Of a stretch of 64,000 nucleotides of DNA, positions 3,001 through 50,865 are shown piece by piece (position 1 is the first letter of the stretch; every line of letters starts with the position of its first letter). The notes beneath the pieces were generated by a model. That model ran no database searches. It was not told where the DNA came from and worked only from the letters and a program-made list of their open reading frames with translations. Source of the stretch: Perkinsus chesapeaki ATCC PRA-425 (taxonomy: Eukaryota; Protista; Perkinsozoa). The translations under genes were made by a program, and so were the position numbers. Location of the stretch: NCBI GenBank assembly GCA_013115145.1, contig JAAPAO010000082.1, positions 23,492 to 87,491 on the forward strand. Direction: 5' to 3'.

Positions 3001-5519
3001 ACTGGACAAGAACTCACAGTGAAGATTCTTCCAACGACAACTTCAGAAAAGGTATCCTTGTACACCGCCGCGGTATCTATCTTCTCCACCTGTCCATTTC
3101 CCAGATCAGCCCCCTCGACATGATCAAGATCGACCTGAGCATTAGATGTTACCAGCGGCGGCGGGCGCCGTAGCAGGCTTCGTATCAGACTCACAGCGAC
3201 GTATTGCCCCCACTGTTGGGCGAACTCCTTAGCATCCTGTTCACGTGGGAACACAACCGCGACCTCGTCCTTGCGCTCCTCCATGGAGGGTGTGTCACCG
3301 CGGAAGGACAGCCCGCAGCGTGAACGTACAGCATACTCATCTAGATAAGAGATGTTCGTAACACCGCCGCTGGTATCGAGATAACCTACTCTGATTTCTC
3401 TGCTCAATGGTCCAAACCTTTTGACAGGCATACCACTCCTTATCCTCTGGCTTAGGCACAGCTTCAGAGCCAACCTGACAGCATGACAGTGACTCATACA
3501 GGGCAGAGTCTAAGACCCACCGCCTTACCGCGAGCCACAAAAGCCTCACACGATCTTCACGAGTGTATCTTTCCCTAGTAGCCGACACCAGTGTGTAGTT
3601 ACCACTGGCATCGTTGTTGTCAGAAGGTGTTATCTCAACTCGGAGAGCTGGTGTTAGTAGGGCCAGATTAACCGATACCTGAAAGGCAGCAGCATTACCG
3701 ATACGTTATTGATTAAGTCTGTAGTGGTACGTCAGCTCTAAAGTGGGACCACTCCGACGAGAATCTCCAGGCATCATCTTCATTTTTAAAACGTATGTCG
3801 ACTGTTCTCCCTTGGCATTTAGCATTGACGATGTAAGCATCACTCGCACTCTCATAGACAACAGGCTCGCTGACTCTGTCACATCTAATGCTGCCGTCGA
3901 GACCTTCCACCTACACCAGACACAACCGTCGTGGGCCTGCGCGGCGCTGGTGGGGAACGAAAAGATACTGGAACCGAGAATCGAACTCGGGACCTACTGC
4001 GTGTTAGGCAGTCGTCATAACCAACTAGACCATTCCAGCGTTGAAATCCCTTCAAACCAACCCCATGCCATCAGACAGCGCTCACCTCGATCCGCCCACG
4101 GACTGTCCTCTTCCCCATATCGCATACATCAGATGTTGCCCTCAGCAGCTTACCCGAGAAGTCACCAGAGAATACGCCCTCACTGCGGGACACCAAGTCA
4201 TCAGGAACCTGTGACAAGTACAATGACCCATCAACTGCAACAACACCTCATCTCACCTCGTTGAACCCACCCCAGCGAGCGGCAAACTTTTCAGCGAGCT
4301 CCTCGGTGGAGAAGCTTAATTCGACATCCTTCTTGTCACACGCAGCCTTCACGGTCTTCCCTTCGATATCAGTGGCACCAGCACAGTTGTACTTCTCCCC
4401 AGACTTCATCTGAAACGGGAAGTCCGCCGGGGAATCGCCCAGGTCTCGTCTACAGTGAGAATGCGCTCTGTGGCCATTTCAGTGGAAGGATTGATGCGGA
4501 CCTCGGCGGAAGCGATGTCAGATCCTTCCAGTTCAGAGGAACGGATCGGTACCTTACAAAAAGGACTGCACCAACACCCGTGGTAACATCAGAGCTTACT
4601 CCGAGCGTGTATCCTCCCCAGTTAGCCGCAAACATCATTGCGGTAACTCTCTCTTTAAAGAGGAGGTTGAATGTCTTAGTGACTTTATTTTGATATGTGC
4701 AGGTGAGCTCAACTTCGTAACGTCCGTTTGCTTCGATCGGACCGGAGTGGACTTTGTCACAATATACTTTATATTCTCCCAGCTGAACTTATGTACTTAC
4801 GATGCGTCTACTCAGAATTCACTTACTGTTATGCGTCGTAGCCGAGGGCTGCTATTACGATAGCGAATGTACGATAAGCCAAGGTTCTGCTTCACCCCCC
4901 ACCACTGAGCGAAAGGGTTCTTCTCCACCCAAGCATCAGCAACAACTTCGGGTGATACGGTGAACTGAAAGGGAACCATTTCGGGGAAGCCATCAAGACA
5001 AAGCAGTCGTTTGTTCCACTAAACTTACGGTCTCGAGATCTCCCCAAAGGACGGCGAATTGAAGTGCTTCGTACTCGTGCTCGAAATACAGGCTTGTTGG
5101 TTTCCCATCACAAGTAGTTGATACTTTATAAGCAGACTCTTCAGTATCCCTTCTTGGAGATTCAGTAACAGCCTCGCATTTATGCTTGGAGAAGCTACCG
5201 CGGTTATCACCAACGAGCTGAGGTATGAAGTGAGACAAGTCGATAAGCCTCGATGGCTCACCCATATAGTTCTTGGCTCCTTCTGTGTATTGACAGCCTT
5301 CGCGATCTGTGAGGCTTCCTTAACGCTATGGATGACCACTTTATTGCATTGATCCACGATATCATCCGCGATCTAAAGGTGAGGGGTAACAAGACCATAC
5401 ATCACAGTTCCCACGTGTTCTGTAATGGGTACATCTTGAGCTCCAACAAGTACTCCGAGAGAAAACAGCGCAGCAGCTGCCCTTTTCCAGCCAGGGTAAG
5501 CGGCCTTTGTGGAATTCAT
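1..5519 (-). CDS. Large secreted multi-exon protein with >=10 tandem copies of an unrecognised Cys-pair / FAxxWG domain (runs off left edge)
   Basis: ATG at 5519 gives MNSTKAAYPGWKRAAAALFSLGVLVGAQDVP (signal-peptide-like). Splicing short GT-AG introns joins the minus-strand ORF fragments in frame (e.g. introns 4783-4826, 4209-4256, 3911-4085). Recurring motif xCxxV..YxVxxxC..LxFxxExxAxxFAxxWG. Confidence 0.8.
3966..4039 (-). tRNA. trnV-AAC: tRNA-Val(AAC), intron-nested
   Basis: Reverse complement GCTGGAA TG GTCTAGTTGGTTATGAC G ACTGC CTAACAC GCAGT AGGTC CCGAG TTCGATT CTCGG TTCCAGT A folds as a cloverleaf with anticodon AAC, followed by TTTT. Confidence 0.95.
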
Positions 5520-11763: not shown

Positions 11764-13584
11764 TCAAAAAGTCGCTCCACTGCACCGAAGGGCTTCCTTC
11801 GTATAACGTTTACAGTTGGAGAAGCCCATGTCTTCGGAGAAATCTCCACCATAGTAGCACCGGACCCACTCCCAATCGTGAATTGCGTACAGTGACCCAT
11901 CGACATCAAAAAGAGAGTCGAACTGTTCTTGACTGAGGATCCCCTCAGCAACTGTGCGCGTTTTCAAGTCATTAAGTAAGTTCCAAGAATACTCAATACC
12001 ACCCGAAGGATCGGGATACGAAGTAGAATCGTAGGCGCACATGGAGAGCTTCCAGCAATACTGATCAAGAGTACAAGAACCTTCCAACATGATGGTGATC
12101 TTAGCCTTTAAATTCTCCCATCCAGGTTGAGTACAAACTTCACATTGTTCAGTCATCATGTAATTCATACGATATAAAAGATCATCTTTATAATCTCCAT
12201 CAATAGCATTACGATAAAGCATCATAGTAGCATGATCAGCATATTGCATTATATATTGAGTACCAAGAGGACTATGAGCATCAAGGGTAAAGTCGAACAG
12301 CAGCGAGTTGGGCGCATACCCCATTTTCGCGGTAACGTTACTTCTTATCTGCTGCGCAGTGAGTAACGTCTTTAGGATGTCATCAGGGCTCATGCGCTCT
12401 GCATCAAAGCTCAGTCCTATGGGAGCAACCTGCTGCATATCTTCTGCCATTATATGATCCTCCAAGTACTGCTCGAATGTGCTCAAGAATTGGAGCATTA
12501 GAGAGCCGTTGCGGGTCTTGGTATCACCATAAGTGAGCCATAACCTTTGGTCATTACCGGTGCGTTGGCGCCATTCTTTCATAAAAGGTAGTAGCTTCTC
12601 TGCATCATGAATTCGGTCTGGATTGGTGTTATCAGCAATGTTAACATAAACATCACCAGAGTTCCATAATTTACCAATATCAGAGGCACCAAAGTTAATC
12701 AATGATGGATCACCCTTCCTCCAATAATCTTGAGACCATGAGTATGTACCAAACCTACGCTCATTCGTTACATTTCGCGTTGGTGCAATATCGGTGGTCG
12801 TCGAAGGTGTTGTAATTTCAGGTGCAATGGTAGTATCACACGGCTGAAAAGACATATCCATGGCGATTCTCCAAAGTTCCTCTTACTGTTGTGCGGCGTA
12901 GGCGCGCATTGCCTTTCTCGTAATGAATATGCAATTCTGGTTGAGGGTTCTGCTTCAAGCCCTGCCACTGAGCGAAAGGATTCTTCTCCACCCAATCGTC
13001 GGCAACAACTTCGGGTGATACGGTGAACTGAGGGGAATAATTTCGGGGAAGTCATCAAGACAAAGCAGTCGTTTGTTCCACTAAACTTACAGTCTCGAGA
13101 TCTCCCCAAAGGACGGCGAATTGGAGTGCCTCGTACTCGTGCTCGAAATACAGGCTTGTTGGTTTCCCATCACAAGTAGTTGATACTTTATAAGCAGACT
13201 CTTCAGTATCCCTTCTTGGAGATTCAGTAACAGCCTCACATTTATGCTTGGAGAAGCTACCGCGGTTATCACCAACGAGCTGAAGGATAAAGTGAGACAA
13301 GTCGATAAGCCTCGATGGCTCACCCATATAGTTCTTGGCTCCTTCTGTGTATTGACAGCCTTCGCGATCTGTGAGGCTTCCTTAACGCTATGGATGACCA
13401 CTTTATTGCATTGATCCACGATATCATCCGCGATCTAAAGGTGAGAGGTAACAAGACCATACATCACAGTTCTCACGTGTTCTGTAATGGGTACATCTTG
13501 AGCTCCAACAAATACTCCCAACGAGATTAGAACGGCCAGAGCAGTTTGCTTCTGGCTCTTAAATGTGGAGGAGGTCAAATTCAT
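11764..13584 (-). CDS. Chimeric secreted protein: repeat-domain-gene 5' exons spliced to a GH-like TIM-barrel domain
   Basis: ATG 13584 gives MNLTSSTFKSQKQTALAVLISLGVFVGAQDVP. Exons are homologous to 4827-5519. Phase-0 intron 12844-12886 (ACA|GTAAG...TTTCAG|CCG) joins in frame to the 12843-11764 exon containing RFGTYSWSQDYW...GLSFDAE. Confidence 0.8.
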
Positions 13585-28906: not shown

Positions 28907-30691
28907 TTACCAGAGTAACGCAGCCGAGGCAGTTGTTGAAGTACTGTCGCAGTCACGACACATGCATCTGTCTACATCCTGGTGGTAGTCTTTAACACAG
29001 TTGGAGAACCCCATTTGGCGGGAGAACTCATCACCATAATAACATCTTACCCATTCCCAGTTATGAATAACATACAATGAACCGTGAATATCGTAAAGGT
29101 AGTCGAATTGTTCTTGAGTGAGAATGCCGTCGGAAACTGTACGAGCCTTTAACTCATTAAGCAAGTCCCAAGCATATTCGATACCACCAGAGGGATCGGG
29201 ATACGAATCGGTACCATAGGCACACATGGAGAGCTTCCAGCAATACTGATCAACGGTACAAGAACCTTCCAACATGATGGTGATCTTAGCCTTTAGATTC
29301 TCCCATCCAGGTTGAGTACAAACTTCACATTGTTCAGTCATCATATAATTCATACGATATAAAAGATCATCTTTATAATCTCCATCAATAGCATTACGAT
29401 AAAGCATCATAGTAGCATGATCAGCATATTGCATTATATATTGAGTACCAAGAGTATTCTTTTGTCCTTCTATAGCAAAATCAATAAATAATGATCCAGG
29501 AGCATAACCCATCTTATTAGTAACATCCTCCTTCATCTCTTGAGCCTTCAGCAAAGTCTTCTTGATATCTTCGGGCTCCATATGTTCCACATCGAAACTC
29601 AAACCGACTGGAGCAATGGCTTGCATATCCTTAGCCGTGATGTAGTCCTCCAAGTACTTCTGGAACGTATCCACGAACTCGAGCATACGAGATCCCTTGC
29701 CGGTCTTGACATCCCCGTATGTGAGCCATAACCTTTGGTCGTTACCGGTGCGTTGGCGCCATTCTTTCATAAAAGGTAGCAGCTTCTCTGCATCATGAAT
29801 TCGGTCTGGATTGGTGTTATCAGCAATGTTAACATAAACATCACCAGAGTTCCATAATTTACCAATATCAGAGGCACCAAAGTTAATCAATGATGGATCA
29901 CCCTTCCTCCAATAATCTTGAGACCATGAGTATGTACCAAACCTACGCTCATTCGTCTCGTTACTAGTAGTAGTGGTAGGTGTCGGTGTTGTCGTCACCT
30001 CTGTGGTGGCTGTCGTTAAAGGCGACGTTGTCCCATGAATCGTGGAAGCAACAGTCGTTGTAGTTGGCAGTTCAGTCGTAGTGGTGACAGCCTCCCTGGT
30101 CGTCATGACAGACCCAGATGTCGTCTGAGTGCTGGCTGCAGCACTCGACGTTGATGGTGGAGTAGTGCCGCTTGTGCTGGTCGTACTGGTCGTGGTAGCA
30201 GGAGCCTCTGTGGTCGTCATCGCCTGTGACGTAACAGAGTGGCAGGAACATGGGGCATTGGTGCCTGAGCAGACACTTGGAACTGTCCAGTATTTGCAGT
30301 AGGATCCCGGGTGCAGTGATGCACAATACGAGTCTCCTTCAGTGCAACCGGTTTCGGTTGTTGTAGATGTCGCCGCAGTGGTGGGCGTGGTCACCGAGTG
30401 CACGGAAGCTGTCGTGCTACTTTTCCTTGTAGTTGTGGTGGCCGGACCTTCGGTCGTGCCCTGTGGGGTGGTGCTGCCATCGCAAGAACACTCAGTGTTA
30501 TCAGACTGGCATCTGCTGGGAGTCTCCCAGTACTTACAGTACGACCCCGGATGAATTGAGGCGCAGAAAGCATCCCCAGAGGGACAGTCAGTAGTGGCAG
30601 CAGAAGTGAGAGAGTATAATGATAAGACGGAGAGATAAGATATTATAAAGCTTTTCATAGTAACAGAAGCGAAAAGGAACTGCTTAGCCAC
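28907..30691 (-). CDS. Secreted GH-like TIM-barrel protein with two 6-Cys modules and Thr-rich linkers (intronless)
   Basis: Hydrophobic signal, two C-x6-C-x8-C-x8-C-x6-C-x-C modules, Thr-rich linkers and a conserved domain with GLSFDVEH. The GH assignment is inference. Confidence 0.85.
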   Translation of the reverse strand: MAKQFLFASVTMKSFIISYLSVLSLYSLTSAATTDCPSGDAFCASIHPGSYCKYWETPSRCQSDNTECSCDGSTTPQGTTEGPATTTTRKSSTTASVHSVTTPTTAATSTTTETGCTEGDSYCASLHPGSYCKYWTVPSVCSGTNAPCSCHSVTSQAMTTTEAPATTTSTTSTSGTTPPSTSSAAASTQTTSGSVMTTREAVTTTTELPTTTTVASTIHGTTSPLTTATTEVTTTPTPTTTTSNETNERRFGTYSWSQDYWRKGDPSLINFGASDIGKLWNSGDVYVNIADNTNPDRIHDAEKLLPFMKEWRQRTGNDQRLWLTYGDVKTGKGSRMLEFVDTFQKYLEDYITAKDMQAIAPVGLSFDVEHMEPEDIKKTLLKAQEMKEDVTNKMGYAPGSLFIDFAIEGQKNTLGTQYIMQYADHATMMLYRNAIDGDYKDDLLYRMNYMMTEQCEVCTQPGWENLKAKITIMLEGSCTVDQYCWKLSMCAYGTDSYPDPSGGIEYAWDLLNELKARTVSDGILTQEQFDYLYDIHGSLYVIHNWEWVRCYYGDEFSRQMGFSNCVKDYHQDVDRCMCRDCDSTSTTASAALLW

Positions 30692-33874: not shown

Positions 33875-34418
33875 TAGTGCGGAAAAATGGTACTGAGAAT
33901 TTAAAGAGACCATGCCAAAGGGAAAAATAGGAAAGTGAATGACAGAAGGAAATCGAGAACTGGATAGATACCTCATAGTGTAATAGTGAATGCTTTATTT
34001 AGTTAATTATAGGAACATATCGCATTGGTGTAGTATGAGAACGTATCACGATAGTGACAAACATCATGTGGATAACACTGCATTGTGATCTCGGTGTGAA
34101 ATTGCCAGGTGAGAGCAACACGCACTCTAGTGAGTATCTTGAGGTAGGAAGAGTGTCTCATGTAATGGCAAGAGTAATGCTTATGGTAGACAATATTAGT
34201 GAAGCAAAGGACAGAGATCACAAGACAAAGCACATGAACAAAAAGTAAGAAATCGTTGGGAATTTGTTGCGCACTGAAACCAATTGGGTAGGAAGGTGAA
34301 TAGTCAAGTGAGCCATCAACGGTAGATAACAATACGAATACAGCGAGGAGACAATGCTAGATTCAACGATGCAGATTGCAATTATACGGCAGATGAGAGG
34401 ATAAGGAGAAAGAGAAAG

Positions 34419-34500
34419 TGAGTGCTGTGGGGTTCGAACCCACGCGGACACTGTCCATTGGATCTTAAGTCCAACCCCTTAACCGCTCGGGCAAACACTC
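34419..34500 (-). tRNA. trnL-TAA: tRNA-Leu(UAA)
   Basis: GAGTGTT TG CCCGAGCGGTTAAGGG G TTGGA CTTAAGA TCCAA long variable arm GTGGG TTCGAAC CCCAC AGCACTC A. Confidence 0.95.
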
Positions 34501-44988: not shown

Positions 44989-46605
44989 TTACTCGGCCCG
45001 GCATTGAGCCGCTAGGCTGTGGTAGTTGTTGCAATTGGAGAAGCCCATCTCCTTCGAGAAGTCATCGCCATAGGAACAACGGACCCATTCCCAGTCGTGG
45101 ACGGCGTATAATGTACCGTCAATGTCATACAAATGCTCAAACTGGTCTTGGGTCAAAATGCCATCAGAAACTGTACGCTCACGAAGAGTGTTGAGCGTGC
45201 TCCACATATATTCAATACCTCCCTCGGAATTGGGATAAGTAGGTGTATCGTAAGCACACATAGAAAGCTTATGGCAGTAGTCACCTTCAGTACAGGAACC
45301 TTCCAACATGATGGTGATCTTAGCCTTTAGATTCTCCCATCCAGGTTGAGTACAAACTTCACATTGTTCAGTCATCATATAATTCATACGATATAAAAGA
45401 TCATCTTTATAATCTCCATCAATAGCATTACGATAAAGCATCATAGTAGCATGATCAGCATATTGCATTATATATTGAGTACCAAGAGTATTCTTTTGTC
45501 CTTCTATAGCAAAATCAATAAATAATGATCCAGGAGCATAACCCATCTTATTAGTAACATCCTCCTTCATCTCTTGAGCCTTCAACAAAGTCTTCTTGAT
45601 ATCTTCGGGCTCCATATGCTCGGTGTCAAAGCTCAGACCAATGGGAGCAATCGCGGCCATATCCTCAGCCGTTATGGATTTTTCCAGGAACTTCTGGAAG
45701 GTGTCAACGAAAGCAAGCATCCTTTTGCCATCATGCTTCTCGATATCACCATAGGTCAAAAAGATACGCTGGTCATTGCCAGTCACTTCACGCCATTGCT
45801 TCATCCAAGGCAACAATTTCTCTTGGTCGTGAATTCTATCGTAGTTGGTCTGATCCGCAACGTTCACATACACATCGCCGGAATTCCACAACTTTCCCAT
45901 GTCAGAGGCACCGAAGTTCACCAGAGTATCATCATTTTTGCGCCAGTAGTCCTGAGACCAAGAGTAGGTAGCGAAACGGTGTTCGTCTCCGGATGGCTTC
46001 ACAGTGGTGCTCGCGACCTCTGAAGTTGTAGTGGAACCAGTAGTACTTGAGACAGAAGTAGTGGTCGTAGTTTCTAACGTAGGGAACGTGGTTGTCGAAG
46101 GCTCTGCACTCGTCGTTGAAGTATTACTCGCGCTGGCTGTAGACGTAGTGGGAAGAGCAGTGCCACGAGTAGTCGAAGCTGCTTCTGTAGGAACAGTGAT
46201 AGAGGCAGTTGTACTCGGCAATACAGTGGTTGTAGCTCTTAGATGAGTCGTAGTAGAGGGAGCGTTAGTAGACGTAGTTGCAGCGGGCGAAGTACCGACG
46301 GTTGAATGAGGGGTGGTAGAAGGCGGGTGAGCAGTTACAGTGCTCTCACTGCTATCACTTCCGCAGGAACAAGGAAGGGCAACCCCTTGGCAAACTGAAG
46401 GGGCCTGCCAGTATTTGCAGTAGGAACCAGGTAAAGCAGCAGCACAGACTGCATCACCCTGGAAACAATCGTCCGCAGAAACAAGAGCTCCAAAGGAGGC
46501 GGCAAGTAAGCACTTGGTTATCAGACGAGCCATGAATAAAGAAACAGAAACAGGCCAAAGATTAGCTGAAAAGGAAAACCTCACTGACGAACATTCACAG
46601 GCCAC
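44989..46605 (-). CDS. Secreted GH-like TIM-barrel family member, one 6-Cys module (intronless)
   Basis: Signal peptide (likely start at MARLITK), CFQGDAVCAAALPGSYCKYWQAPSVCQGVALPCSC, Thr-rich linker and GLSFDTEH. Confidence 0.85.
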   Translation of the reverse strand: MACECSSVRFSFSANLWPVSVSLFMARLITKCLLAASFGALVSADDCFQGDAVCAAALPGSYCKYWQAPSVCQGVALPCSCGSDSSESTVTAHPPSTTPHSTVGTSPAATTSTNAPSTTTHLRATTTVLPSTTASITVPTEAASTTRGTALPTTSTASASNTSTTSAEPSTTTFPTLETTTTTSVSSTTGSTTTSEVASTTVKPSGDEHRFATYSWSQDYWRKNDDTLVNFGASDMGKLWNSGDVYVNVADQTNYDRIHDQEKLLPWMKQWREVTGNDQRIFLTYGDIEKHDGKRMLAFVDTFQKFLEKSITAEDMAAIAPIGLSFDTEHMEPEDIKKTLLKAQEMKEDVTNKMGYAPGSLFIDFAIEGQKNTLGTQYIMQYADHATMMLYRNAIDGDYKDDLLYRMNYMMTEQCEVCTQPGWENLKAKITIMLEGSCTEGDYCHKLSMCAYDTPTYPNSEGGIEYMWSTLNTLRERTVSDGILTQDQFEHLYDIDGTLYAVHDWEWVRCSYGDDFSKEMGFSNCNNYHSLAAQCRAE

Positions 46606-47443: not shown

Positions 47444-48796
47444 TCAGTTAGCTCTACATGTTGATCCTTCGACGTGATAGTTCGAACAACTAGTATACCC
47501 CATCTCCTTCGAGAATGAATCGCCATAATAACATCTCGTCCACTCCCAGTTGTTCATACTAAATAATGTACCATCAGTGTCGAAAAGATAATTGAACTGT
47601 TCCGTAGTGACAAGCTTATCAGAGATCATACGGTCAGTTAACTCATTTACAGTGTCCCATACATATTGTATTCCACCATCTTTATTAGGATAAGCTGCGG
47701 AATCGTAGGCACACATAGAAACTTTGTGACAATAGTCAACGTTCGTGCAAGATCCTTCCACCAAAATAGTAATCTTAGCTTTGAGGTTCTCCCAGCCGGG
47801 TTGAGTGCAAACTGCACATTGTTGAGTGAGCATCCACTCCACACGCTGAACCAGACCATCTCCATCAATAGCGTTACGGAAGACCTCAAAGGTAGCATGG
47901 TCAGCTAGCTGCATAACATACTGAGTGGCCAAAGGATTGAGGTCACCAGATACAGCAAAGTCGATCAATAAGGATCCAGGTAAATAACCATTCTTCTGAG
48001 AAATCCTAGTCTTCATATCTTGGGCATTCTCAAGAGTCTCCTTCACATAGCTACTGTCCATACCTTCAGCATCAAAACTGAGACCTATAGGGGCGATTTC
48101 CCGCATATCTTCCGAAGAGACGTACTCCTCAAGGAATCTCTCGAAAGTGTCAACGAAGTCTACCATCCTTTGATTGTAGTGCTTGTCAGCATCCCCATAG
48201 GTAAGAAAGATACGTTCAGTGTTGCCAGTGACCGACCTCCACTCTTTCATCCAAGCAACCAGTAGATCACCATCGTAAATCTGGTCGTAGTTGCTGTAGT
48301 CCGCGATATTCACGTATACATCACCGGAGTTCCACAACATACCCATATCAGAAGCACCGAAGTCGGTTAGGGAAGAATCGCCATTCCGCCAGTACGACTG
48401 AGACCACGAATAGGTACCAAACCTAACTTCTCGGCTGGGAGGGGCAGCAGAAGCATGGGTCGTCGTGGCAGGGGCTGCAGTGGGCTTCGGTGTTGTAGAT
48501 CTCAAATGCGTTCGAGTTGTAGTTGGCCGAGGGGTAGCATTCTCGCTTGTCGAATCAGCAGTCGTCACAGCGAGAGTAGTATCCTCGAAACCGGTAGTCA
48601 AAATCGTAGTAGTGGGCTCGGCATCGCAAGAACAAGCGACACCGGTACCCTGGCAAGTACTTGGAGTACTCCAATACTTGCAATAGGAGCCAGGCTGTGT
48701 CGATGCACAGAAAGCATCTCCATTTACGCAACTAGCTTCAGCATTAGAGAATGCTAGAGCAAATAGGATGAATGAAGAAATATAATACGTGGACAT
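47444..48796 (-). CDS. Secreted GH-like TIM-barrel family member, most divergent copy (intronless)
   Basis: Signal peptide, CVNGDAFCASTQPGSYCKYWSTPSTCQGTGVACSC, linker and GLSFDAEG. Confidence 0.85.
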   Translation of the reverse strand: MSTYYISSFILFALAFSNAEASCVNGDAFCASTQPGSYCKYWSTPSTCQGTGVACSCDAEPTTTILTTGFEDTTLAVTTADSTSENATPRPTTTRTHLRSTTPKPTAAPATTTHASAAPPSREVRFGTYSWSQSYWRNGDSSLTDFGASDMGMLWNSGDVYVNIADYSNYDQIYDGDLLVAWMKEWRSVTGNTERIFLTYGDADKHYNQRMVDFVDTFERFLEEYVSSEDMREIAPIGLSFDAEGMDSSYVKETLENAQDMKTRISQKNGYLPGSLLIDFAVSGDLNPLATQYVMQLADHATFEVFRNAIDGDGLVQRVEWMLTQQCAVCTQPGWENLKAKITILVEGSCTNVDYCHKVSMCAYDSAAYPNKDGGIQYVWDTVNELTDRMISDKLVTTEQFNYLFDTDGTLFSMNNWEWTRCYYGDSFSKEMGYTSCSNYHVEGSTCRAN

Positions 48797-49572: not shown

Positions 49573-50865
49573 TTACTGGATTTTGCACTGGTTTGACAGT
49601 TCGTTGTACTGACTGATACAGTTCTTGTAACCCATTTGGCGGGAGAACTCATCACCATAATAACATCTTACCCATTCCCAGTCATGAATAACATACAATG
49701 AACCATGAATATCATAAAGGTAGTCGAATTGTTCTTGAGTGAGAATGCCATCGGAAACTGTACGAGCCTTTAACTCATTAAGCAAATCCCAAGCATATTC
49801 GATACCACCAGAGGGATCGGGATACGAATCGGTACCATAGGCACACATGGAAAGCTTCTTACAGTACTTCCCAGCCTCGCAGGAACCTTCCAACATGATG
49901 GTGATCTTAGCCTTTAGATTCTCCCATCCAGGTTGAGTACAAACTTCACATTGTTCAGTCATCATATAATTCATACGATATAAAAGATCATCTTTATAAT
50001 CTCCATCAATAGCATTACGATAAAGCATCATAGTAGCATGATCAGCATATTGCATTATATATTGAGTACCAAGAGTATTCTTTTCTCCTTCTATAGCAAA
50101 ATCAATAAATAATGATCCAGGAGCATAACCCATCTTATTAGTAACATCCTCCTTCATCTCTTGAGCCTTCAACAAAGTCTTCTTGATATCTTCGGGCTCC
50201 ATATGTTCCACATCGAAACTCAAACCGATTGGAGCAATAGCCCGCATATCATTAGCCGAAATGAAGTTCTTGAGATACTCTCCAAATGTATCTACGAACT
50301 GGGCCATACGATTGCCGTTTGAAGACTTGATGTCGCCGTAGGTCAACCAGATCCTCTCTGTGTTACCGGTGCTCTTACGCCAGTCCTTCATCCAAGGAAG
50401 GAGCTTCTCCTGGTTATGTATGCGGTCATAGTTAGTCTGATCGGCAACGTTGACGTACACATCGCCCGAATTCCATAGTTTTCCCATATCAGAGGCACCA
50501 AACTGGGTGAGACTTTTATCACCGGACCTCCAATAGTCTTGGGACCAGGAGTAAGTGCCAAATCTCACATCAGAAGTAACAGGAGGCCTCGTCGTGGCTG
50601 CAGTAGGCCTGCTTGTCGTTGGCACCGGCTTCTTAGTGGTGGTCTTATCCAAGAACTTTGTGCTGGTAGTAGGACCACTTCCACCGCAAGAGCAAGGAGT
50701 ATTAGATCCCTGACAAACGCTAGGGGTCTCGTAGTACTTGCAGTAAGAGCCAGAAACAATACTGGCACAGTACTGATCACCAGCACTGCAATCAACAGCA
50801 GCAGATGATGACACTCCCAACAGGAGCGCGCATAGAACACTGGATAAGGTACGTCGGCCAGACAT
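49573..50865 (-). CDS. Secreted GH-like TIM-barrel family member, short linker (intronless)
   Basis: Signal peptide, CSAGDQYCASIVSGSYCKYYETPSVCQGSNTPCSC and GLSFDVEH. Confidence 0.85.
   Translation of the reverse strand: MSGRRTLSSVLCALLLGVSSSAAVDCSAGDQYCASIVSGSYCKYYETPSVCQGSNTPCSCGGSGPTTSTKFLDKTTTKKPVPTTSRPTAATTRPPVTSDVRFGTYSWSQDYWRSGDKSLTQFGASDMGKLWNSGDVYVNVADQTNYDRIHNQEKLLPWMKDWRKSTGNTERIWLTYGDIKSSNGNRMAQFVDTFGEYLKNFISANDMRAIAPIGLSFDVEHMEPEDIKKTLLKAQEMKEDVTNKMGYAPGSLFIDFAIEGEKNTLGTQYIMQYADHATMMLYRNAIDGDYKDDLLYRMNYMMTEQCEVCTQPGWENLKAKITIMLEGSCEAGKYCKKLSMCAYGTDSYPDPSGGIEYAWDLLNELKARTVSDGILTQEQFDYLYDIHGSLYVIHDWEWVRCYYGDEFSRQMGYKNCISQYNELSNQCKIQ

Follow-up and report, generated by a model that had tools for sequence, protein, structure and literature searches.

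Can a secreted protein of a protist parasite be assembled from pieces of two unrelated neighbouring genes? The question is raised by a gene at positions 13584-11764, on the reverse strand, of a 64,000-nucleotide (nt) stretch of DNA (the window) from Perkinsus chesapeaki ATCC PRA-425, a perkinsozoan and clam parasite. To our knowledge, little is known of how the secreted-protein repertoires of perkinsozoans diversify. An earlier note, made from the sequence alone, had described the gene as an exon-shuffled chimera, in which the 5' exons of a gene encoding repeats with the motif FAxxWG are spliced in frame onto a barrel domain. Our results uphold this description: the junction occurs spliced in RNA and unspliced in two independent DNA data sets, and each half has separate paralogues and is under purifying selection. 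We are thus highly confident that the chimera is a real, expressed gene, in which the 5' exons of an FAxxWG-repeat gene are joined in frame to the barrel of a five-member family.

Gene model and splice junction

The gene comprises five exons and four GT..AG introns of 42-63 nt, all in phase 0 and all with GTRAG..YAG borders (4/4). Splicing gives an open reading frame (ORF) of 1629 nt, or 542 amino acids (aa), identical residue for residue to GenBank KAF4673464.1 (FOL47_010516, "hypothetical protein", Perkinsus chesapeaki), which sits on the 87-kb contig of assembly GCA_013115145.1. Our literature search found no paper on the gene or on either parent family. Exon 1 (13477-13584, 36 codons; all parts of the gene are on the minus strand) holds the start codon and a predicted signal peptide, with a hydrophobic core at residues ~14-27 and cleavage at ...VGA|QD. 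It is followed by intron 1 (13435-13476, 42 nt, GTGAG..TTTAG), exon 2 (13324-13434, 37 codons), intron 2 (13280-13323, 44 nt), exon 3 (13091-13279, 63 codons), intron 3 (13028-13090, 63 nt) and exon 4 (12887-13027, 47 codons). The N-terminal half thereby encodes, in order, the signal peptide, a short helical segment, one full Cys...Cys...FAxxWG unit whose core lies in exon 3 (Cys87...Cys109...FAVLWG), and an inter-repeat tail in exon 4 with a degenerate FAQWQG motif, terminating in RLRRTT. The junction intron, intron 4 (12844-12886, 43 nt, GTAAG..TTCAG), leads in phase 0 to the barrel, as the earlier note had stated, and keeping it unspliced brings in stop codons at once and closes the reading frame. 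Exon 5 (11764-12843, 359 codons and the stop) opens with a short Thr/Pro-rich stretch, PCDTTIAPEITTPSTTTDIAPT, the remnant of a linker (residues 184-210), and continues with a TIM-barrel domain of ~335 aa beginning ERRFGTYSWSQDYW.

The two parent families have no similarity to each other. The N-terminal half (12887-13584) is homologous, at 66-100% per exon, to exons 1-4 of a repeat gene to its left (4827-5519, minus strand), a parental-type copy annotated with 1872 aa that extends beyond the window start. The best match is between 12946-13518 and 4883-5456 (96.0% over 574 bp by blastn), and weaker but clear homology reaches the ATG (13584/5519) and the exon end ...ACA|GTAAG (12887/4827). Intron positions are equal, and the exons measure 108/111/189/141 nt in the chimera, against 105/111/189/138 nt for the left gene. 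Both the mirrored exon structure and the shared exon end reported from the sequence therefore hold. Exon 2 is identical in 111/111 nt and exon 3 in 185/189 nt, all four differences being synonymous, and introns 1, 2 and 3 match in 40/42, 41/44 and 58/64 positions. The initial ~65 nt of exon 1 are diverged and its remainder is near-identical, and the final ~60 nt of exon 4 are diverged, yet the ending RLRRxT|GTAAG is retained. At least seven further divergent FAxxWG units follow in the repeat gene within the window; the automatic splice model of the whole left gene was unreliable in its middle and was used only for exons 1-5 and for choosing repeat units.

The other half points elsewhere. Exon 5 (12843-11764) matches 28997-29956 at 83.6% and three more paralogues as well (blastn), and 11812-12768 is homologous to all four barrel paralogues at 72-85% nt identity. 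These are p29 (28907-30691), the nearest relative of the chimera barrel, p45 (44989-46605), p49 (49573-50865) and p47 (47444-48796), the most divergent of the four. All lie on the minus strand as single, intronless ORFs encoding a signal peptide, one 35-aa six-Cys (6-Cys) module or, in p29, two, a long Thr-rich linker and the barrel. The chimera is without a 6-Cys module, and these architectures confirm that its paralogues hold one where it has the FAxxWG part. The swap was larger than first described, as most of the Thr-rich linker was replaced together with the module. In tblastn searches we found no FAxxWG repeats downstream of the chimera barrel and no 6-Cys remnants upstream of it.

The junction was recovered from RNA of the same organism, for which two runs, both small, were available. 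One of these (X1) yields a 430-nt contig that matches 12542-12843 (302 nt) and 12887-13005 (119 nt) with 0 mismatches and skips exactly 43 nt, the ends of which read CT..AC on the plus strand and GT..AG on the gene strand. RNA evidence for the 12887/12843 junction, which the earlier note had named as the check to make, is thus at hand. Since the contig crosses both position 12768, where the chimera diverges from p29, and the chimera-specific exon-4 tail, it cannot derive from either parent. A second contig from X1 (12161-12343) covers the chimera-specific barrel core. The in-frame ATG at 12861, which would start an ORF at 11764-12861, lies within intron 4 and is spliced out. In DNA, 344-nt contigs at 12739-13082 from two studies (X3, X4) contain the junction unspliced and error-free, and the spliced form is in no DNA contig; both a false join at the fusion point and a processed gene copy are therefore excluded. 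The suspicion of misassembly is thereby removed at the fusion point; further out, contigs break at the borders of the tracts described below.

Some observations weigh against reading the five exons as one transcript. RNA support is limited to the exon 4-exon 5 junction, exons 1-3 are without an RNA contig in the two small runs, and the X1 contig stops at 13005, 22 nt before the exon-4 acceptor, with nine unmatched letters. These nine letters (GGCGCATAG on the plus strand) are non-genomic, and there is no AG at that place. The mismatch is probably a contig-end artefact. A single transcript from exon 1 through exon 5 is presumed.

Both halves of the chimera are under purifying selection. Compared with p29, the barrel core and tail have a proportion of synonymous differences (pS) of 0.78 and a proportion of nonsynonymous differences (pN) of 0.17. 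Of the 70 alignment columns with 90% conservation or more among the other 18 family members, 66 are also retained in the chimera barrel; three of the exceptions are conservative substitutions and the fourth is a boundary gap. In the N-terminal half, exons 2-3 differ from the left gene in 4/300 nt, all synonymous, compared with 10/149 in introns 1-3 (Fisher p = 0.003).

The barrel and the exchanged modules

The earlier note had called the C-terminal domain a GH-like barrel, which is borne out at the level of the fold and finds no counterpart in sequence profiles. An AlphaFold2 model built with a 19-sequence family alignment has eight beta/alpha units, with strands alternating with helices (predicted local distance difference test (pLDDT) score 83.7, predicted template modelling (TM) score 0.86). 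A search of the PDB that was independent of Foldseek placed chitinases of glycoside hydrolase family 18 (GH18) first, with Z 14.2-13.3 and 230-266 residues aligned, and in the ESM Atlas GH18 clusters made up 4/10 rows (TM 0.58-0.60). Foldseek itself returned weak matches only, to GH26, GH18, PgaB and GH84. Directly after model strand 4 stands the motif S-x-D-x-E (S328, D330 and E332 in the chimera, within G-L-S328-F-D330-A-E332), which is invariant across the 19 sequences, down to 33% identity. Strand 3 is followed by a conserved TYGD, and strand 6 carries M-x-Y-R-N.

Several results speak against a closer assignment. At Z 12-13 the GH18 matches pass gradually into GH5, GH1 and other TIM-barrel glycosidases, and the Foldseek TM scores are no higher than 0.4-0.5. 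Pfam, searched with three pieces and with all 19 barrel members, gave no match, and for the 19 members none at E <= 1, GH18 (PF00704) included, an NCBIfam search of the barrel gave no match, and the barrel profile found only a chance match (E = 1.7) among PDB sequences with phmmer/hmmsearch. On the strength of its model we therefore describe the domain as a GH18-like TIM barrel, and we do not file it as GH18 because no sequence model recognises it and the motif agrees only in part. Compared with the GH18 family of chitinases, endo-beta-N-acetylglucosaminidases (ENGases) and chitinase-like lectins, it has in common the predicted (beta/alpha)8 barrel, with best structural matches at Z 13-14 and an Atlas TM of ~0.6, and a D-x-E that the secondary structure of the model places directly after strand 4, where GH18 (motif DxxDxDxE) has its catalytic pair. 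It differs in its lack of sequence-profile similarity, in the Ser that stands for the first Asp of DxDxE in every family member, in that other TIM-barrel families score nearly as well, and in a distribution confined to Perkinsus and a few environmental sequences.

Tentatively, these data suggest that the chimera may encode a TIM-barrel protein that is secreted and either resembles glycosidases or binds glycans, from a family centred on Perkinsus and closest to GH18 in fold. The Cys-rich targeting module would have been swapped for one FAxxWG unit, which might change where, or to what, the barrel is delivered. A related and somewhat more doubtful possibility is that the barrel is a catalytically inert scaffold that binds glycans or proteins, like the chitinase-like lectins, in which case the family would consist of adhesins or decoys and the chimera would carry another binding surface. 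The Ser in place of the first Asp of DxDxE, the presence of chitinase-like lectins (concanavalin B, TCLL, YKL-40) among the structural matches and the missing hidden Markov model (HMM) link to any active family are all in line with such a role. However, GH18 enzymes catalyse by the D-x-E residues, and inert chitinase-like proteins typically lack the Glu, while D-x-E is invariant in all 19 sequences of this family, even at 33% identity.

A bolder proposal, which we regard as unlikely, is that the barrels form an unrecognised, Perkinsozoa-centred glycosidase family, distantly derived from GH18, with an SxDxE active site and interchangeable targeting modules. The FAxxWG repeat, the building block of a giant secreted protein of 1872 aa, would itself bind a ligand and retarget the enzyme to another substrate of the host or of the parasite wall. 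If this were true, the hybrid would go on evolving in step with both parent families by way of gene conversion.

The suggestion of the earlier note that the FAxxWG repeat and the 6-Cys module can stand in for one another, and may bind carbohydrates or the host, is plausible. What weighs against any specific role is that the FAxxWG module is without any functional lead. Its predicted fold is a five-stranded sheet capped by the helix that bears FAxxWG, in a model of moderate confidence (pLDDT 72-91 in the core, poor flanks). Structure searches with the core gave no relative (best Z 5.3, to a PH-like topology and below noise; Foldseek E > 0.06; Atlas TM < 0.4), and ESM Atlas feature and structure searches with the N-terminal module gave noise-level scores. 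No carbohydrate-binding module (CBM) was matched by the 6-Cys members in sequence-model searches, or by the FAxxWG core in sequence or fold searches. An exhaustive phmmer search of the N-terminal module against 1.8 billion cluster representatives had a single return, an Ig-like repeat protein from Bacteroidales. Its E value of 2e-5 came from adding up 5 short repeats that match 'DDWVEKNP', and we rejected it as spurious. The same search missed the left repeat gene too, and a blank there is no evidence of absence.

Exon 4 of both genes (12887-13027 and 4827-4964, minus strand) contains a second, degenerate FAxxWG-like motif, NPFAQWQG in the chimera and NPFAQWWG in the left gene, and lacks the Cys pair and the sheet ahead of it. 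The motif resembles a half-repeat, with the helix alone, placed between full units. The two 6-Cys modules of p29 (30227-30601, minus strand) are separated by a Thr-rich spacer, and the other paralogues have one module each; the number of modules in the family thus varies independently of the chimera.

Beyond the window, the homologues of the barrel are Perkinsus proteins and three environmental sequences. A second subclade and two environmental members (together P0007, P0010, P0011, P0013-P0016, P0019, P0020 and L003:42-1220) have a different N-terminus, which consists of a hydrophobic stretch, a lipobox-like L-x-G-C-S or S-G-C and a Pro-rich spacer, with no 6-Cys module. Because no barrel gene has introns, in a genome that is rich in them, and some have these lipobox-like starts, an old bacterial origin of the family is a possibility, which a 1.4-kb metagenome contig did not settle.

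Conversion tracts and the age of the fusion

How close the chimera is to its relatives depends on where one looks. In the N-terminal half, near-identity to the left repeat gene (96% over 574 bp) is confined to 12946-13518, with introns (93% identical) almost as conserved as exons and with exactly identical stretches of 156 nt and 107 nt. Outside this tract, divergence is strong, in the initial ~65 nt of the coding sequence and the final ~60 nt of exon 4 as well as in intron 4. The barrel half has two such tracts with p29. The first, 12593-12768, is exactly identical over 176 nt to 29781-29956, and the second, 12071-12269, spans 199 nt with two private differences (12111, 12160) and is shared also with p45 and p49 from 12112. 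Identity to p29 accordingly runs from 100% over 12593-12768 to 55-60% around 12300-12430, back to 99-100% over 12071-12269 and down to ~75% in the tail. DNA assembly graphs fork at the tract borders 12768, 13518, 12269 and 12077, and DNA word depth steps up inside the tracts to ~2x and, in 12071-12269, ~4x.

The chimera is thus not a simple recent copy of its two neighbours, as the near-identity is confined to these tracts. The simplest reading is non-allelic gene conversion from both parent families, located 8 kb and 16-37 kb away. The best overall explanation, in which we place strong confidence, includes that the chimera still exchanges sequence with both of them.

Similar patches occur among the paralogues themselves. 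Long identical protein and DNA stretches (EPEDIKKTLLKAQEMKEDV...ITIMLEGSC) are found in p29, p45 and p49 amid far lower identity, especially at 29256-29454, 45331-45488 and 49918-50075 (minus strand), and p47 stands outside these tracts. Gene conversion therefore homogenises the whole local family and not the chimera alone.

Outside the tracts, synonymous sites are saturated and pN is low in both halves, which suggests that the fusion is probably old and not fresh. The unconverted core and tail of the barrel have a pS of 0.78-0.90 and a pN of 0.17-0.32 against every paralogue. As a yardstick for the other half, the Perkinsus olseni orthologue of the repeat gene (P0024/L002) has exons that are ~80-85% identical and introns that cannot be aligned. 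In the exon-4 tail, ENLGLTY of P. olseni resembles QNLGLSY of the left gene (NLGL[ST]Y), and QNPQPELH of the chimera differs from both. A tree on unconverted columns places the chimera barrel on a long terminal branch (0.5) inside the 6-Cys clade (support 96/97), which holds p29, p49, one P. olseni member and one Perkinsus marinus member.

Two points count against an old fusion. With an old origin, an orthologous chimera is expected in other Perkinsus species, barring its loss or a gap in the fragmented assemblies, and none was found among P. olseni or P. marinus proteins, in length-windowed searches of fragmented assemblies. A word-based search (298-948 aa) matched only the chimera itself, and a 149-aa query matched only the P. 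olseni repeat-gene orthologue, on a contig that ends before the informative part. In addition, saturation blocks telling 'old' from 'fast'.

The converse, that the chimera was recently assembled from the 5' end of the left gene and p29, would make the tracts remains of the duplication. The diverged stretches would then result from rapid evolution after the fusion or from later conversion by unsampled paralogues. The unsuccessful search for an orthologue fits this, as do the position within the p29/p49 clade on an unusually long branch and the 93% identity of introns in the N-terminal tract, which is far closer than between species. On the other hand, a pS of 0.78-0.9 with a pN of only ~0.2 indicates long neutral time under constraint and no amino-acid burst. 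The tracts begin and end abruptly, and each has its own level of identity (96%, 99% or 100%), which fits separate conversion events, and the exon-4 tail is unlike the form common to P. chesapeaki and P. olseni. We therefore consider a young chimera improbable. Conversion with parental families can make an old fusion look young.

That the barrel is expressed alone, either from the ATG at 12861 or by spliced-leader trans-splicing, with the upstream exons as a dead remnant left by a partial repeat-gene duplication, is very improbable. The ORF 11764-12861 does open with an ATG, exons 1-3 lack RNA contigs and the spliced contig ends inside exon 4, but this contig, the sole one here, lacks the intron that includes the ATG and runs 119 nt into exon 4. 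A product starting at 12861 would also be without a signal peptide, unlike every family member. Furthermore, exons 2-3 have accumulated only synonymous changes and the introns have diverged five times faster, which is unexpected for a dead relic. Least credible of all is an assembly artefact from mis-joined near-identical copies or collapsed haplotypes of a polyploid genome: the exact identities of the N-terminal copies are long enough to confuse short-read graphs and Logan contigs do break at the tract borders, but exon-4 tail, intron 4, linker and barrel occur together in single error-free contigs from two DNA studies, the junction is also spliced in RNA, and a switch within identical stretches would still yield a gene that joins the N-terminal module to the barrel.

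Origin of the chimera and comparable systems

The chimera, real and probably old, probably arose by a DNA-level rearrangement that brought an intronless barrel-gene body to a place downstream of the exon-4 splice donor within a copy of an FAxxWG gene. The repeat-gene part would have supplied four phase-0 exons, encoding the signal peptide, one repeat and the inter-repeat tail, as well as the splice donor. A break inside the linker of the barrel gene would account for the replacement of the 6-Cys module and most of the linker. With phase 0 at both ends of every parental exon, the reading frame survives any join of this kind, and the stop codon of the barrel itself would terminate the protein. 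The acceptor of intron 4 may be that of the FAxxWG parent or may be new; intron 4 is identical to the parental intron in 24/44 positions and exon 5 begins P-C-D against ...Y-C-D in the parent, which is too little to decide. The product would be secreted by means of the borrowed signal peptide, with one FAxxWG unit in place of the 6-Cys module, and both halves would since have been patched repeatedly, through non-allelic gene conversion, with sequence from members of both parental families at distances of 8 to 37 kb.

This resembles the Drosophila gene jingwei, in which an intronless Adh-derived body captured the 5' exons of a duplicated gene. As in jingwei-type chimeras, an intronless coding body from one family has gained, by way of an intron, the 5' exons and introns of a gene from another family, and presumably its promoter as well. 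The reading frame is preserved across a junction that is transcribed and spliced, both parental genes still lie nearby, and purifying selection has acted on the gene since the fusion. Unlike them, the chimera has no sign of retroposition: a poly-A relic is absent, and introns are natively lacking throughout the barrel family. A secretion signal and a repeat module came with the captured part, the gene is patched by conversion from both parent families, and both parents are orphan families of a protist parasite.

The paralogues can also be compared with modular secreted glycoside hydrolases such as the fungal CBM1-linker-cellulases, in which a small disulfide-rich CBM is connected by a Ser/Thr-rich, O-glycosylated linker to a catalytic TIM barrel. 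The four paralogues have a corresponding layout, with a signal peptide, a 35-aa, six-Cys aromatic module (GSYCKYW), a Thr-rich linker and a TIM barrel. The number of modules is not constant (two in p29), and the chimera is an example of module replacement. In contrast to those enzymes, the 6-Cys module and the barrel match no CBM or GH model, so that carbohydrate binding is suggested by the layout only, and the replacement FAxxWG module resembles no known CBM.

Gene birth by exon shuffling is well known as a kind of event, and the gene model was already in GenBank as a hypothetical protein. What is new here is a well-documented chimera in an understudied parasite, together with the age and conversion patching of the fusion and a candidate GH18-like family. 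Gene birth by exon shuffling is thereby documented in a perkinsozoan, with support that is unusually complete, as both parents lie within 64 kb, RNA confirms the splicing of the junction, and selective constraint acts on each half. The chimera also links two orphan secreted families of a bivalve parasite. The ~335-aa barrel, with its invariant S-x-D-x-E and predicted GH18-like fold, is a candidate enzyme, and the FAxxWG unit may be an autonomous module.

Two transfer RNA (tRNA) genes were predicted by ARAGORN in the window. A tRNA-Val(AAC) at 3966-4039 (minus strand) lies inside the left repeat gene and is apparently intronic, between the exon ending at ~4086 and the exon starting at ~3910, and a tRNA-Leu(TAA) is located at 34418-34500 (minus strand).

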